A DNA stretch of 64,000 bases from Geosiphon pyriformis uo1 (GCA_016748015.1 JAAOMT010000690.1:186001-250000); one strand, 5' to 3'. Shown: positions 38,897 through 60,659, counted from the stretch's first letter. Program-made: numbers and translations. The notes: generated by a model not told the origin, from the letters alone.

Positions 38897-40149
38897 CTAC
38901 TCTTCATTAGTCAAAGCCTTGGCAAAATAAAATGAAAGACCTAATTGAGGCTTCGTCGTTAAATGTACTCCATCCCAATATAAATAATCTTCAGGATTAT
39001 TACATGCAGGAACCTTTGGCCTTGCAGCACGATTTAAACAAGCGCTTTCAAATTCCGTGATCCCACCGTACTTTTCGGCGGCAGTGGTATTAGTGACAAA
39101 TTTGTTATAATCGGCTGTATATACTTTAACGTCAGGATTGGTACTTTTGAAATCAGTAATGGCATTTTCTAAAAATTCATTCTGTTTCAAATAGATTTGG
39201 AAAAATGTGTCAGCGAGTTCTGGCCTCCCAAGTTTAAACGCGGGAGTTGCTGATAGGTTAGGAACGGAAGGGACTAAGAAGTTTCGAACACCAATCTTGT
39301 AAAGAGTCGACCAAGTTTTGGCGATGCGTTGAACAACTTGTTCAGGTTCGGCAGTAAAATTGGTATAAAGGTAATCAGTTAAAATTGGCCCCCATGACTA
39401 ATTGATATAGGTGTTAGTGCCAAATTATAAATTTGATGTCATGGGAATAGATAAAAACAAAAGCAAGTTACTCACCACAACCAATGTCTTATTTAAATCA
39501 TCCCCAGGTTTAACAGTTTCTTTATAACTATCAACTTGCTGAGCAATACCAGGAATGTTAACTCGCGTCGAGTTTGTCTCGTCCGGAATATAACCTGTTT
39601 TCAACATTTAAAATTAATTAGCATTAAGCATTACACCGGAAAAAAGTGATTTAATAACTTATTCGATACCTTGAATAACGTCGCTACTATTCTCGTTCAA
39701 ATTAAAATTAAAATTAAAATGAAAGTAAGATTTTATTTCGCCGAAATAAATACTAGAATTTCCAACTTACTCTGTTGTTGCACCAATATAGGCGAAAATG
39801 TCAATCTCAGCACCTAAAAATCCTCCAAGGTATTCTGCCCATATAGGACCATTCGATGGTCGCCCTTGATAGTCGGACTCAGTTAGGAAACCTGTTGGCG
39901 CAATTTTCGCTGCGTTTCCTGCGTCTATTAAAGTAAAGAAAAGAATTTAAAAGGATCAATTTTCTCACAGAAGTAATGAAATGAAAATAGGGTAAACAAA
40001 AACTTCTTTGAGAAAGATTTACCTGAAAAAGAGTCGCCAAAAACTACCAACTTATTGTACTTTTTCTTTAGTCCCGGATACGATTCGATCAACGAAACGA
40101 AGGCGAGTAACGAAAAGATCAAGAAAATCAGATTAATTAGTTTCGACAT
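38897..40149 (-). CDS. Secreted GDSL/SGNH lipase-esterase (CE16-like), 305 aa, exons 40149-40023, 39924-39771, 39686-39670, 39594-39476, 39397-38897
   Basis: Signal peptide, block I VVFGDSFSDAGN, GRPSNGPIWAEYL, block II FAYIGAT and block V YLYWDGVHLT. All four introns are GT-AG and phase-compatible. Confidence 0.92.
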
Positions 40150-44127: not shown

Positions 44128-47100
44128 TTAAGACTCAAAATTATTGCCCCAACCCCAATGCTGCGGATGATTTTGAGAGGTTGGAGAATGATTGGAATGT
44201 GGTTGTGAAGAATGCTGTTCTTGATGTTGATTTTGATGATGCTGATTTTGATGATGCTGATGCTGATGCTGTTCATGATGCCTTTCTATAATGTCCTCGT
44301 CACTACTATGATCAATCATTAAAGATCCTTCAGTAGGCGATGTAACAGGTGAAATAGGAGATATCATACCAGGTGCGTGGCTGTCGCTATTTAAAGTATT
44401 AATCCCTGGCATGTCCGTCACGATACCCGTCATTCGCGTCATGTTATTCCTTAAATCTGAACCCGAGTTCACCATTTCTCCACTGTTTAAATATGTCCCA
44501 TGTCCAAAATTCATTCCAATATTCAATGATAAATTCGTGACTGATTTCGGTGGTGTTTTAGGTAGATAAAATTGCTTTTGTGCTTGAATTGTCGAGTAGG
44601 GTTGTTGAGGTTGTTGTAATGGTGGATATTGTGGATAGGGCAAAACCATTGTGCCTGCTGAAGGATGGAACGAGAAATTTGAAGACGTTGGTGAAATTAA
44701 TCGTGGCAATGATGTTTGCGTGGAAATTGGAGCTTGGGCAGCCCGAGTATTAATATCAGATGATGAATTAGAGGTAGAACTCAAAAATGGCATCATCATT
44801 GTATCATTTCCATGAGGAGGGTTCGTCAATTGGTTTGATGAATGATGATTCGTCTGTGATGGTTGAGCTGGTGGCCATGAAAAATGATAGCCAGGTGGCC
44901 AAGGGGTATGAAAAGAAACTCCAGATCCAGAAGTTGGATTGTTTGATGTGGATGATGCATCAAACGACATGTCATTTTGCCGATGATTTTGTTGGGAAGA
45001 ATGCTGTTGGGTTTGATATTGCTGTTGATCACGATTAGATTGTTCTTGATACATTGGCATTTGATAGGCTGGAGCAGAAGAATTGTTACTTATATCTGTC
45101 GTATCTGAATTACTATCGTGGAAATTATGTTGCATTGGAACTGGGCGATTGATCGGCAAGAGCAAAGTTGGAGATGAAGTGAAAATTGGGTCTGCTTGCT
45201 CTTTATGATGTGGATTTGATTGTAGCCAAGATTCAGAAATGCCCGTGTTACCTGGGACATTAATCTCAGGTGAATTCTGTTGCGCCGCAGCCTGTGCCAA
45301 TAAATCTATTCCAGGTGGTGACGTTTGATCAGATGACATCCTCCCTTTTCTGCTATTGCCAATATCTAGTTGAGAATTTTTACCACGGTATGAGTCGCCA
45401 CTCTGCAATTCAGTAAAACGTGAGACATTTCGTGTCCCCGTGGTGGCTCTGCCAGTGGTGTCAGGATCAATCACACTACTTGACCCTATATCTATTACGT
45501 CTTTGTTTGTGGACGATGGATTTATCATCCTATGAGATACCAATGCCAGAGCAGCATTGACAATATTAATTGTATGTTCATCATTATCATCCAAATGTGA
45601 ACGTAATTGAGAAGCAAAAATGGCAATCCAGTTCCTAATATCTGAACTTATAAAATGCAAGGATGGGACTGCCTCGAGAAGTTGAAACCATCGCATGGTT
45701 TGTAGCGTCTTTTCTTTGGCATTTCTATAGAGTTCCGATTCTTTAGCTTCCTCTCGAAGATTTTGGATATGAACATAACCAGCATATAATGCACAGTGTG
45801 CAATAAATTGATTACTACTGATAATAGAGACAAGATGTTCGTTGAGAAATTCAGCGATTCGATTAGCTGCTTCATTGCAAATGGATTTGCTTCTTTCAAA
45901 ATGGATGTTTGGATGATGAATTCTAATTGTCGTGTAATGATATAAAATGCACTGGTAAATTCGTAAATGTTCAATTGTCGTTTCTTGAGAAGCAATTTCG
46001 AAAGTACGAATGTTGTCCAATTGAAGGAATGAAGGTAAATCATTTTTCCACTTATTCAATCGGTCTTCCAATCTCTTCATCGCAATATCCGAGCCATTTT
46101 CCGTGCCAAGGGTGAATTCCAGTATGTCGTACATTATTTTGGTAATTTTGAAATAGCTCAAGAAATATGCGGTGATCTTCATTTCATTATCATCAGCGTC
46201 TAACGCTGAATCCGATTTAGTTGTTAGTTCGATTGTACTATGCTTGTCTTCAAATACACTAAGCTGATTCAGAGATACGCATTGTAAATGATTCACGATA
46301 TTTATCGCCCACCATAGCTATCAATAGAAGGCAAATTTTGTTAATCATTTGAACTTTGAAAGTTTCGTGAATTACCCACAATGTTTTGAAAACCCACCTT
46401 GTTCCTTGCTTCCTTTTCCATCTCCGAAAATCCTTCTGAAGCACTTTTATCATGCAATCGCATAGTTACGGCTAATGTTGTTGCCATTCCAACATACATT
46501 CGACTTTTGAGACTTCTTAATGCGTCAAAAACTCCCAAAAGAAAGCATCCAGTTGCGGTGCTTAATCTGGGGATGTCAAAATTTTTTGTAATAAGGCCTG
46601 AAAATTTTGGCCTTTGGTTTTAATTTTCAAAAGAAAATAGAGTCATACGAAGAAAATTCCTTGATGCCATAGAAAAAATTCGAAATACCTTGAGCCTGTT
46701 CATAGAATCTTTGGCCAACTGTGGTTGGGTCATTCGGGTTTTTTCGAACAACCGGGTCATCCGAGAATTTTGAGCCAATTGCACACACTGCACTCAGGAG
46801 CAAATCGTTCATTGGTTTAGTGGGATCCCCCAATCGTTGCAAAAAATAAGCTCTATGTAAAACCGGGAAGATTATGTGAAAATTTCGAAAGTATAGGCTA
46901 ACTAAACTTTGGGTCAGCTGAGAGGATTGTGTTTCCACAGATCCGGACGGGGGCTGACGGGTCTCTTCTTTGGGTGGAATAATATATGGACTCAGTTCTT
47001 GTAAAATTATGCCTTCCTGCTGATTTGTCATTGAAGTCAAAAGTCCAACCGCGTAATCAAATTCACCCTTTTTAGAATCCACATTTGGCAGAATCTTGGG

Positions 47101-47903
47101 AACACGCCTTTTTAAGGGAGGAGTTTCTTGAGAATTTAATGTCGAAATTCCAAGAGTTGAAGTTGATACACTGGGAATCTTTAATTTTGGAGATGATTGT
47201 CGTTTGATGATGGATGAACTTCCTTTTCTTCCAGACTGTGACGCCGTAGAAATTGAAGACTTTTTTCCTGCGGTGCCACTTGATCTTAAGAGACTCTGAG
47301 TATCAATATTGCTGTGACTACGGGAGTGGGCTGAACTAGAACTTGAAGGTTGATTCCTTGAATTCACGTTTCTATTGCTATTCCTTGTATTTTGATTATA
47401 GGTGCATTCTAGTTGTACTGAAGTACAATAGGCGCAAGGAGTTTGTGCATAACCGTCTCCTTCACATCTTACCTTGATAAATGATATGGAAAGTAGTGAG
47501 TTAATAAAAAAAATATAACTTGAAATTCTATCTTTGGATAATTTTGGACAAGATCCAAAAAATTTCTGTATTCATTGACTTTAAAATAATGTTTTTTCTA
47601 CAGGAGACCACACAAAACAGAAAATAAAGTTTTCTAAAAATTTTACTGGTGGTCAAAGAACGAATTTTTTTTTTGATAATGCCAAGCAGTTTTAAATGAG
47701 CTATAACAGACAATTAAGTTTGCTTCTATCAAGATATTTTTCACTTGAACTTTTCATGGTTCAATGAATTTTTTTATATTATTAGTAAAAAATACCTTTC
47801 TTCTCCGGCAACGATCACAAGCGATTGTTTTGAGCTTTTTATCTTTGGGAGCAAGCTCATTAGATCCAGAGGGGGAATTTCTTTTTCCAGCTGGAGTAGT
47901 CAT
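44128..47903 (-). CDS. Zn(II)2Cys6 fungal transcription factor with middle homology region, 1093 aa, exons 47903-47796, 47472-46689, 46597-46398, 46317-44128
   Basis: Zinc cluster ACDRCRRRK/VRCEGDGYAQTPCAYCTSVQLECTY spans intron 1. MHR motifs LVSLYFRNFHIIFPVLHRAYF, LLLSAVCAIGSKF and EKEARNK/LWWAI are present. The tail is long and rich in S/Q/H/P. All introns are GT-AG and in phase. Confidence 0.95.
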
Positions 47904-57900: not shown

Positions 57901-58493
57901 AAATATTTAAAAATCAGATGATTATTTATATGATAAACACTTTATTTTATGAAAATTTATGTACATGTCTTTTAAGTAAAATTTTAACCAAAACTTTTTA
58001 TTTTTAATTAAGTTTATAATTATCATGTGGAATATTCAGTAATTTTTTGAAATATTTGTATCAATTACAAATATTTTAATGTTGTATTGATTCCTAATAT
58101 TTGAGCAACTAAATTCAAAAAAAATTTAAGTTGAATTATGTTATACAAGCACATTTACACAAAAAGATTTATTATCATCATTTCTATTGTTTTTGAGAGC
58201 CCTGCTTTGTAGCAAAAAATACTAAAGAGTTTAAAAAATTGATAATAAAGGCACGACCTTTTCTTATAGAATTGAGCAATTTTATTTATTTTCAAAAATT
58301 AATAATTTCCGGTCTGCAAGATTTTAATTTTAATGTGCTGACATTCTCTAATGAAATCAAGTTACATTATAAAAATTTTTCGCCATCAGATGAATAAATT
58401 TGGTTAGGTAACCTTATTAAAAAATTATAAGAAAATGCTAATGAATAGGTACTCATATAAAATTAGCAGGGCAAAAATAGTAAATAGATAATC

Positions 58494-59712
58494 CTATTGA
58501 GCTAAAGCTTTGAGAAAAACAAAGGCGAGACCAAGGTGAACTTTTGTAGTTAAATTTAAGGGATCCCAAAAGAAGTATTCTTCAGGATTAGAGCAAGGTT
58601 TCGCCGATTTGTCTATAAGATTATTCAAACAGGCATCTTTTGTATTTGTGATACCAGCATACTGCTCTAAGGCCGTTGTATTCCTCTGGTATTTATTAAA
58701 ATCGGCTGTGTAGATCGTGGCATCAGGATATTTTGTCGTAAAACTGGCGATGGAATTTTTCAGGGCTTCATTATGTTTAAGGTAAATTTCGAACAATATT
58801 GGTTTTAAATCCTCAAAATACAATTCAACGGCAGGAAAGAGAGAGAAATCCGGAAGACTTGGTACAAGGATATTTCGGACTCCGATTTCGTATAAGCTAA
58901 CCCAGATTTTAGAAAGTCTTTCTACAACTTCCTCAGGCACTGCCATAAAGTTAGAGAATCTATAATCTGCTCCACCAAGCCATGTCTATAAGAAAGGAAA
59001 ACCCTTAGATTTAATGATAACTTTCTCTGATATTGCTTAATATTCATCTGTTAAAAAAGAAAATAACTCACAACTACTAAGGTTTTATTTGAATCAATCC
59101 CAGATTTTGACGTATCTTTGTATAATTCGAATTGTTGCCTGAGCCCTGGTACCTCAAATTTCGTTCCGTTCACTTCGAGAAAACCTATCCAAATAGATGC
59201 ATACAAATTGTTATTGGTTATAAAAACTCTTAAATTCAAATAGAAAATTTAGAATTTTAAATTTATTTAATTACCTTGAATCACTTCATTGCTTTGGTTT
59301 AATAAAAGCCAAGTTTAACGAATTTGTTTAAAAATTTTATCAATAAAGATCGATCTCTTTCTTATTACATACTCTGAAGGTGCCGCAGCATAAGCAAAAT
59401 CTTTAATCTCCGCGCCTAAAAAACTAGCAAGATATTCTGGCCACACTAGACCATTTGAAAAACGGCCTTGGTAGTAATCATCGGTAAGAAGGTCAGGTCC
59501 TGCCAGCTTGTAAGAATTTCCATTATCTAAAACAATAGATTATTTCCTCAATTTGTTTACTAGGATGAGACTTTTTCATTTCCACACTCACCTGAAACTA
59601 CATCACCGAATACTACCAGCTTATTAAATTTTTTTTTTAACGCAGGAAAGCCATCTGTCAATGAGGCACAAGCGAAAAGGGATATGAATAATGCAAAAAA
59701 GTATTGATTCAT
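58494..59712 (-). CDS. Secreted GDSL/SGNH paralogue lacking the catalytic residues (predicted pseudo-esterase), 298 aa, exons 59712-59592, 59526-59373, 59291-59275, 59184-59072, 58985-58494
   Basis: Same exon structure and intron phases as 38897-40149 (exon 2 is 154 nt and exon 3 is 17 nt in both). Signal peptide and GRFSNGLVWPEYL are retained, but the blocks read FGDVVSD, FAYAAAP, WLGGADY and FWDPLNLT. Confidence 0.9.
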
Positions 59713-60659
59713 GATGATAATTCGAAATAAACTTTGAATTTTGATATAGTTTCTCTCTTTAAGCACCGAGAGATTTTATATAATTCTGGTAAAATTTCTT
59801 ATGGTCATAATAAGTGTTATCAGGTCAAAATATATGTGTTTTATCAAAATCTTTCATTTGTTTTAATGAAGAAAATATTGTTGTCCTATATCGTACTAGC
59901 TTGTCGAAAGACTCGTAATTTCAACAAACAACATTCAATGATAGATCGAAATGTTTTAATGATATTAAAAGTTAATCTGATAAAACAAAATGTTGGATTT
60001 GAAATCAAAATCACCTTCAATAATAATAATTGGAACGACTTATCAATAATTTATTTGCCCACGAGTTAGATGTTATCTCTTAAATATTGAAGCCTTTTAT
60101 GGTGTATTTTTTACAACAAATCAAAAAATTAATTGAATCTGAAGCTAAGATTTATCTGTCTTTGTTGCCAAATAATTCTCTGTCAAATTAACCTATTGAT
60201 TTAAAGTATAAGACTTTTCTTTGTCAATTAATAAGCGATTTCTCTGCTGAAATAACTTAAATCTCGATCAAAATTTGATTTTCTAATACGTAGAGTTTCA
60301 ATTTGATATGAAACAAATATTGAGCGACAAGATTAAGCTAATATTTATACGAACAAAAACCAATTAGACGGAATTTTTTCGATATAAAAACATTCCAACT
60401 TGAAGATCGGGTGACCAAAAAATATCAAGTATAAATCTTCCGGATTGCAGCTATTGATCAAATTATCTTTATATGGCAGTATGAAATAGAAATGTGTATT
60501 TGTAATTGCATGTCTCTCATTAAATGCCTTCCAAATGAAGGATTCCAGTTAATAAAGCTAAAATATTAAATCAATAAATTATATATTGAGTTAACTTTCG
60601 TTAAACCGAAGATAAATAATTCGAAGATTATTTTAATAATTAGCCACTATAATTGATCA

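Follow-up and report, generated by a model that had tools for sequence, protein, structure and literature searches.

G9A89_022993, one of three sister genes for expressed and probably maintained SGNH pseudoenzymes of the fungus Geosiphon pyriformis

Geosiphon pyriformis is a fungus of the Glomeromycotina that houses cyanobacteria, its partner being Nostoc. Within a 64,000-nucleotide stretch of the genome of strain uo1 (GCA_016748015.1, JAAOMT010000690.1:186001-250000; hereafter the window), we analysed the gene G9A89_022993, which encodes a protein of the SGNH/GDSL fold in which all four positions that give the fold its name are replaced. The gene belongs to a small G. pyriformis clade of three maintained, expressed SGNH pseudoenzymes (G9A89_022993, G9A89_022996 and G9A89_022998, hereafter the trio), whose loss of activity we infer from the residues replaced. 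With its catalytic residues replaced, its transcript present and purifying selection acting after the loss, G9A89_022993 is a probable pseudoenzyme, and we give a probability of about 0.7 to its being a maintained non-catalytic protein. An earlier reading of the window from its sequence (the original prediction) had proposed that catalysis was lost while selection kept the scaffold, and this core idea is supported by transcription, by the rate of codon evolution, by the open frame and by the predicted fold; its suggestion that the organism might be mycorrhizal does not apply, as G. pyriformis partners Nostoc and does not form a root mycorrhiza.

Replacement of the catalytic positions

The four motifs of G9A89_022993 read GDVVSD in block I, FAYAAAPSD in block II, GGAD in block III and DPLN in block V. 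Val38, Ala87/Ala88, Ala141 and Asn279 align under the GDS Ser, the GG pair, the GLND Asn and the DVTH His, respectively, of the solved Vibrio thermolabile hemolysin (TLH), and the family traits of PF00657, namely block I Ser, block II Gly, block III Asn and block V His, are all absent. Among 109 family representatives the same columns hold Ser in 103, Gly in 96 (second Gly of the pair), Asn in 95 and His in 104, so the replacements are not due to chance. The claim that all four S-G-N-H positions are replaced is thereby confirmed, with the codons GTA and AAT verified at the former nucleophile Ser and catalytic His (Table 1). Untouched are Asp37, Ser40, Asp41, Asn44, the GRFSNG-VW loop, Asp142, Pro186, His206-Asn207 and FWD (274-276); Asp37, Asp142, Asp276, Cys254 and Cys266 are retained, so that in block V the Asp is kept and the His replaced.

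The change of His to Asn279 also creates an N-L-T sequon (codons 279-281) at the site of the former catalytic His, which the two sister copies, with Gly or Ser at this position, do not have there. If this sequon were used, a glycan would occupy the old active site.

In the SGNH lipase SrL, substitution of Ser, Asn or His by Ala each kills activity but substitution of Gly by Ala does not (PMC10779480), which makes block II the weakest of the four lost positions. These mutants also bear on whether G9A89_022993 is still an enzyme that employs other residues, for example Ser40 of GDVVS together with another base, or a non-hydrolytic chemistry. All eight paralogues compared have Ser40, Asp37, Asp142 and Asp276, which speaks for such an activity. 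However, Ser40 is not new, being the usual second Ser of GDS-x-SD that 78% of active relatives possess; neither His nor any other base has become fixed at position 279 or close to it, the trio having Asn, Gly and Ser there; and both the oxyanion Asn and the oxyanion Gly are gone. We therefore consider a surviving enzymatic activity highly improbable. The absence of Ser, Asn and His, with no base fixed as a substitute, makes hydrolysis very improbable, and G9A89_022993 would be no hydrolase, being unable to form an acyl-enzyme or to activate water.

Transcription of G9A89_022993

One public run (X1) contains contigs matching part of the window, which we compared over 58300-59900. Contig record 3 (277 nt, no mismatches) matches 58890-58985, then 59072-59186, then the letters of a 17-nt exon and finally 59373-59423; it reproduces the modelled joining of exons 5-4-3-2 (58985 to 59072, 59184 to 59275-59291, and 59291 to 59373) and spans blocks II and III. 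Contig record 1, likewise without mismatches, covers 58442-58681 and thus block V and the 3' untranslated region (UTR). Record 4 has 17 mismatches to G9A89_022993 and encodes GDSYSD over the homologous junction of exons 1 and 2, and therefore derives from a Ser-keeping sister copy. Though the run was typed automatically as DNA, its contigs skip introns at GT..AG, which shows that it contains spliced RNA. The original prediction had named the lack of a transcript as a reason to abandon it; a mismatch-free contig, spliced as modelled, is now available over exons 2-5.

Contigs at 59417-59688 and 58883-59446, with 8-17 mismatches to G9A89_022993, show transcripts of two or more paralogues in run X1, one of them of the GDSYSD type. 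The paralogue contigs are deeper than those of G9A89_022993, the contigs of this run carrying no information on expression level or life stage.

Selection after the loss of the catalytic residues

Pairwise ratios of non-synonymous to synonymous substitution rates (dN/dS, or omega) within the trio were 0.37-0.42, with bootstrap upper bounds of 0.57-0.61, and the value for the Ser/His-bearing sister pair, G9A89_002656 and G9A89_023002, was 0.35. A codon model fitted to the trio alone, with kappa profiled, gave omega 0.46 and rejected omega = 1 (twice the log-likelihood difference, 2dlnL = 19.95). Counted at codons that do not vary among the other four close copies, the lineage of G9A89_022993 (L001) carries 7 synonymous and 4 non-synonymous changes, against a neutral expectation of 73% non-synonymous (P = 0.011), and it is the most conservative lineage among the five close copies. 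About 3.9% of point mutations in the coding sequence would give a stop, and the frame would stay open through neutral evolution over 0.10-0.15 substitutions per site with a probability of 0.03-0.006. None of the members of the trio, which are dS ~0.25-0.28 apart, has lost its open frame, any of the four pairs of splice sites or the 17-nt micro-exon; their coding sequences differ by no more than a single in-frame indel, and approximately 320 nt of introns contain 8-17 gapped positions.

The distribution of the changes is uneven. The wider family conserves 59 sites at a level of 70% or more, and the three dead copies all retain 45 of these; the differences specific to dead copies fall at Ser38, Gly88 and His279, to which the L003 copy alone adds R62H and Y143F. 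All five ex-catalytic positions differ among the trio (hypergeometric P = 0.0017), and catalytic positions make up 3 of the 12 at which no two of the three copies agree (P = 0.0005). In the trio, the catalytic machinery has been freed from constraint and the scaffold is under purifying selection.

These data allow the possibility of neutral decay, by which G9A89_022993 would be a functionless duplicate still without a stop, to be weighed. An omega of 0.46 is not very low, the catalytic positions drift and intron divergence is close to dN, all of which would suit a decaying gene. Against this stand the rejection of omega = 1, the small chance of an open frame on even one neutral branch, and the fact that three copies keep frames, splice sites, micro-exon and most family-conserved sites and that the gene is transcribed and spliced. 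Neutral decay is thus largely refuted, and we rate its chances as very slim; a dN/dS near 1 with disrupted orthologues, given by the original prediction as the mark of a young pseudogene, is not what the trio displays.

Stepwise loss in a Geosiphon-only tandem expansion

A search of the 128-Mb assembly with exon 5 revealed 17 paralogous loci, 9 of them on the same contig. The exon plan 121/154/17/113/~490, or a close variant of it, recurs in seven paralogues, the 17-nt exon being common to all seven. In a protein tree with Ambispora, Funneliformis, Podila, chytrid and bacterial relatives as outgroups, seven genes form a Geosiphon-only clade (support 100/98). Within it the trio is grouped with support 100/94, its sister is the pair G9A89_002656 and G9A89_023002 (98/94), in which Ser and His are kept, and next outside this five-gene group stand the in-window paralogue G9A89_022990 and the G9A89_022999-like locus L007. 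A codon tree resolves the trio moderately (85.3/74), with a branching order inside the trio that differs from that of the protein tree. The close copies have a leader in common and identities of 76-81%, with G9A89_022996 and G9A89_022998 being 80-81% identical to G9A89_022993; database searches returned no protein above 52% identity outside the five close genes and none above ~40% outside Geosiphon.

No member of the seven-gene clade has the block III Asn (the position reads A, S, A, S, S, T and G). The nucleophile Ser is encoded by TCA or TCT in four copies, and the corresponding codons of the trio are ATA, ATA and, in G9A89_022993, GTA; the catalytic His is encoded by CAT in the same number of copies, and the trio has AAT (G9A89_022993), GGT and AGT. 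The second-position T common to ATA and GTA, together with the single-step chain CAT-AAT-AGT-GGT, fits a history in which the trio's ancestor lost Ser and His once and drift followed. The catalytic loss was hence stepwise within a Geosiphon-only tandem expansion, Asn being lost first, in all seven copies, and Ser and His later, in the trio ancestor.

Two statements of the original prediction need revision in this light. It held that exactly the four catalytic sites had been lost; all four are indeed replaced, but the Asn and the first Gly were already gone in the sister copies that keep Ser and His. It also spoke of an active paralogue, yet the in-window G9A89_022990, which retains Ser and His (GDSFSD and DGVH), reads ILTD in block III and has neither the oxyanion Asn nor the Gly preceding it. 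G9A89_022996 and G9A89_022998 resemble G9A89_022993 in contig, clade and five-exon plan, and carry Ser to Ile and His to Ser or Gly changes; G9A89_022993 differs from both as the only copy in which both block II Gly are changed to Ala and the His to Asn.

Catalytic positions are replaced in more distant sequences too. In six-frame alignments of distant Geosiphon GDSL paralogues, L015 (G000:C777:589786-593235) reads GDIYS, GAD and DLYC, L016 (C777:582094-585390) has His replaced by Asn and a block III without ND, and L012 (C602:26221-29655) has Thr for both the Asp and the His of block V; judged from these alignments, the three losses look independent. Outside Geosiphon, the Ambispora gerdemannii protein CAG8491045.1 (P0006) keeps GDS and reads DWLN in block V, and the database protein P0083 has Ser to Gly and His to Thr. 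The best matches by shared words among named non-fungal proteins are cyanobacterial SGNH/GDSL hydrolases (Fischerella, Nostocales; P0158, P0161-P0163 and P0166; 32-33% identity, E ~1e-24). A transfer from cyanobacteria was considered and rejected, since a moderately supported split (89/87) divides the fungal sequences (Geosiphon, Ambispora, Funneliformis, Podila and chytrid) from the bacterial ones, the cyanobacterial proteins included, and there is no sign of recent transfer.

A tandem array of this kind could also work by decoy or competition, the dead copies being secreted with their sisters G9A89_002656 and G9A89_023002 and either absorbing an inhibitor or partner directed at those sisters or occupying their substrate without cutting it. 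Transcripts of a GDSYSD-type sister in the same run, the high identity of the copies with their common leader, and a pocket as hypervariable as in an arms race are consistent with this. In Phytophthora sojae the enzyme XEG1 is reportedly protected against a host inhibitor by its inactive paralogue PsXLP1, a precedent that such a mechanism exists. On the other hand, no inhibitor or partner is known, and the host is a cyanobacterium, from which no esterase inhibitors have been described; the sister copies also lack the oxyanion Asn, so that their activity is only presumed; and five sequences give no power to a test for positive selection at single sites. Taken together, we consider a decoy unlikely.

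Fold and closest characterised relatives

The whole protein matches Pfam PF00657 (Lipase_GDSL) over residues 32-285 with 45.3 bits, above the gathering cut-off of 23.6; on single exons, exon 5 scores 18.3 bits, below the threshold, and the short exons give no match. The best matches among solved structures are Legionella PlaA, the Vibrio hemolysin/phospholipases and Pseudomonas ChoE (E 1e-16 to 1e-11). PlaA, PlaC and an SseJ-type effector are the top NCBIfam models, with all scores far under their cut-offs; the nearest named one, NF045906 (PlaA-type lysophospholipase equivalog), scores 101.7 bits against a cut-off of 450, which places G9A89_022993 outside that equivalog.

AlphaFold (AF2, alignment of 109 sequences) returned a model with a mean predicted local distance difference test (pLDDT) score of 93.4 and a predicted template modelling score of 0.90, confidence being low in residues 1-20 only. 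Foldseek searches with this model retrieved ChoE, PlaA and TLH at template modelling (TM) scores of 0.72-0.81 and probability 1.00. The model thus confidently predicts a well-folded three-layer alpha/beta/alpha SGNH protein of the lipid/choline-ester branch, and G9A89_022993 descends from PlaA/TLH-like lipid esterases.

Legionella pneumophila PlaA (PDB 8a24-8a26; TM 0.71-0.75) shares with G9A89_022993 the GDS-x-SDNGN and GRFSNGPVW loops, but it is an active bacterial lysophospholipase A with the full S-G-N-H set and is ~25% identical. The top structural matches, Pseudomonas aeruginosa ChoE (TM 0.75-0.81) and Vibrio TLH/VvPlpA (TLH 0.76 by model length), differ from it likewise in being active bacterial esterases or phospholipases, TLH having an extra N-terminal domain. 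The fungal CE16 acetyl esterases (PDB 7ztn and 8p1g) have the SGNH fold as well (Foldseek TM 0.76 by model), but their sequence similarity is weak and partial and the root-mean-square deviation is ~5 Å. The CE16 label attached to the protein by the original prediction cannot be kept, as the match to CE16 has an E value of 2.6e-4 and is confined to residues 28-152, compared with 1.5e-16 for PlaA and 3e-16 for TLH, and the structure is less close; PlaA, TLH and ChoE are the closest characterised relatives and CE16 is more distant. Since the family clusters with the PlaA/TLH type, other ancestral substrates are likelier than acetyl-xylan.

Comparison with a plant pseudoenzyme

A dead GDSL protein with another function has been described in Arabidopsis, where 3 of 116 GDSL sequences are called dead enzymes; At1g54030 (ERMO3/MVP1/GOLD36), with Ser changed to Gly, has no lipase activity but a new cellular role and is required for the organisation of the endoplasmic reticulum (ER) and the Golgi (PMC4757993; PMC3498303). 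Like G9A89_022993, ERMO3/MVP1/GOLD36 matches the GDSL profile, has lost the block I Ser and has been kept for another function. Compared by the papers' descriptions, it differs as a plant protein of the endomembrane system in which only the Ser is reported as changed, whereas G9A89_022993 is fungal, probably secreted, replaced at four SGNH positions and a member of a three-gene clade; the two have no close common ancestry. In the open-access literature we found no description of this fungal GDSL family or of dead fungal GDSL proteins.

This documented precedent raises the question of whether G9A89_022993, without binding a lipid, acts within the secretory pathway or the cell wall. Its signal peptide indicates entry into the ER, not export, and the hypervariable pocket suggests a function elsewhere on the surface, both in keeping with such a role. 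However, the C terminus is the last helix of the fold and carries no retention signal, and three diverging tandem copies resemble a fast-evolving extracellular family and not a housekeeping factor. A role of the ERMO3/MVP1/GOLD36 kind is therefore quite unlikely here.

Gene model and neighbouring features

The gene model was built by reading the minus strand over 58200-60100 directly and joining the exons from the window sequence (Table 1). All introns are GT..AG, and the 897-nt coding sequence comprises 298 codons and a stop. Its translation matches database protein P0151 (NCBI: hypothetical protein, Geosiphon pyriformis) at every residue, so the splice model agrees with an independent annotation. 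It agrees as well with the original prediction, in which the 298-codon frame, five exons, signal peptide, Cys pair and the motifs GRFSNGLVWPEYL and LYEIGVRNILVP were described as intact.

The signal-peptide region consists of MNQ, a hydrophobic core of 13 residues (residues 4-16, mean Kyte-Doolittle 2.24) and A-C-A. Cys254 and Cys266 are the sole Cys residues of the mature protein and are near-invariant across the family. From these features, G9A89_022993 is probably a secreted, disulfide-bonded protein of ~280 residues in its mature form.

Table 1. Positions of G9A89_022993, its exons and replaced codons, and the paralogue in the window
Feature	Position	Strand	Content	Basis
Gene G9A89_022993	58494-59712	-	SGNH/GDSL-fold protein, 5 exons	spliced from window sequence
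Exon 1 (121 nt)	59592-59712	-	start codon, predicted signal peptide, block I GDVVS	
Predicted signal peptide, codons 1-16	59665-59712	-	A-C-A before likely cleavage site	sequence features
Codon 38, GTA	59599-59601	-	Val at block I nucleophile Ser; at least 2 changes from any Ser codon	
Exon 2 (154 nt)	59373-59526	-	DNGN, GRFSNGLVWPEYL loop, block II FAYAAA	splice model; contig over 59373-59423
Codons 87-88, GCT GCG	59384-59389	-	Ala Ala at block II Gly-Gly, oxyanion hole	
Exon 3 (micro-exon, 17 nt)	59275-59291	-		splice model; letters between two joints of spliced contig
Exon 4 (113 nt)	59072-59184	-		splice model and mismatch-free contig
Exon 5 (492 nt with stop)	58494-58985	-	block III GGAD, LYEIGVRNILVP, Cys254/Cys266, block V DPLN, terminal helix	
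Codon 141, GCA	58968-58970	-	Ala at block III Asn, oxyanion hole	
Codon 279, AAT	58554-58556	-	Asn at block V catalytic His	
3' UTR, at least to 58442	58442-58493	-		mismatch-free contig 58681-58442
Paralogue G9A89_022990	38897-40149	-	305 aa, 52% identical, five-exon plan	model identical to P0156

Between G9A89_022990 and G9A89_022993 lie an open reading frame at 46630-47367 (minus strand) with a fungal-specific transcription factor domain (PF04082, E 6e-9) and a 722-codon open reading frame at 44131-46296 (minus strand) with no Pfam match. Two runs of N, at 17487-17541 (55 bases) and 18200-18219 (20 bases), are assembly gaps or masked sequence. A scan for bacterial promoters and terminators gave fewer sites than shuffled sequences; such a scan does not apply to a fungal gene.

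Discussion

Several points weigh against a maintained, secreted, ligand-binding protein. By the yardstick of introns, the rate argument weakens: intron divergence (K 0.12-0.18) is below dS (0.25-0.28) and dN amounts to 0.6-0.9 of neutral, so that the outcome depends on the yardstick chosen, short AT-rich introns being a poor one. The codon-model estimate of omega itself stands for only moderate constraint, and gene conversion among the tandem copies could distort both trees and rates. The RNA comes as contigs from one run of uncertain library type, with coverage of exons 2-5 and the 3' UTR and not of exon 1 or the first junction. Secretion is predicted by sequence rules, and a binding role is deduced from what the protein retains. 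Moreover, the pocket positions are the most variable ones in the trio, a pattern that a relaxed or diversifying pocket explains better than does a single conserved ligand in the former active centre, and that leaves room for a decoy or for diversifying recognition.

Within the reading of G9A89_022993 as a maintained non-catalytic protein, ligand binding is our tentative proposal for its specific role, somewhat short of an even chance and founded on retained sequence features. Outside the cell, G9A89_022993 would bind, hold or mask a partner or a ligand of the acyl-ester type, and would do so via the retained substrate loops GRFSNG-VWPEYL, LPDFS-P and FWD.

As dead GDSL proteins are already known from plants, the finding alone is a modest addition. 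Its trio documents a stepwise path to a pseudoenzyme within one tandem array, from the early loss of Asn to the later loss of Ser and His, and the Ser/His-keeping sister pair provides a built-in comparison for the dead copies. Glomeromycotina are without FAS1 and FAS2, and the route of lipid uptake in these fatty-acid auxotrophs is an unsettled question (PMC11134847), Geosiphon being the sole member with a cyanobacterial partner. A maintained, expressed and probably secreted clade of non-cutting lipase-fold proteins offers candidates for lipid capture, masking or partner recognition. Though this is unlikely, the dead GDSL trio could be secreted non-cutting lipid handlers in a symbiosis-specific system for lipid uptake or recognition, which capture or ferry acyl lipids of Nostoc or recognise the surface of the partner.

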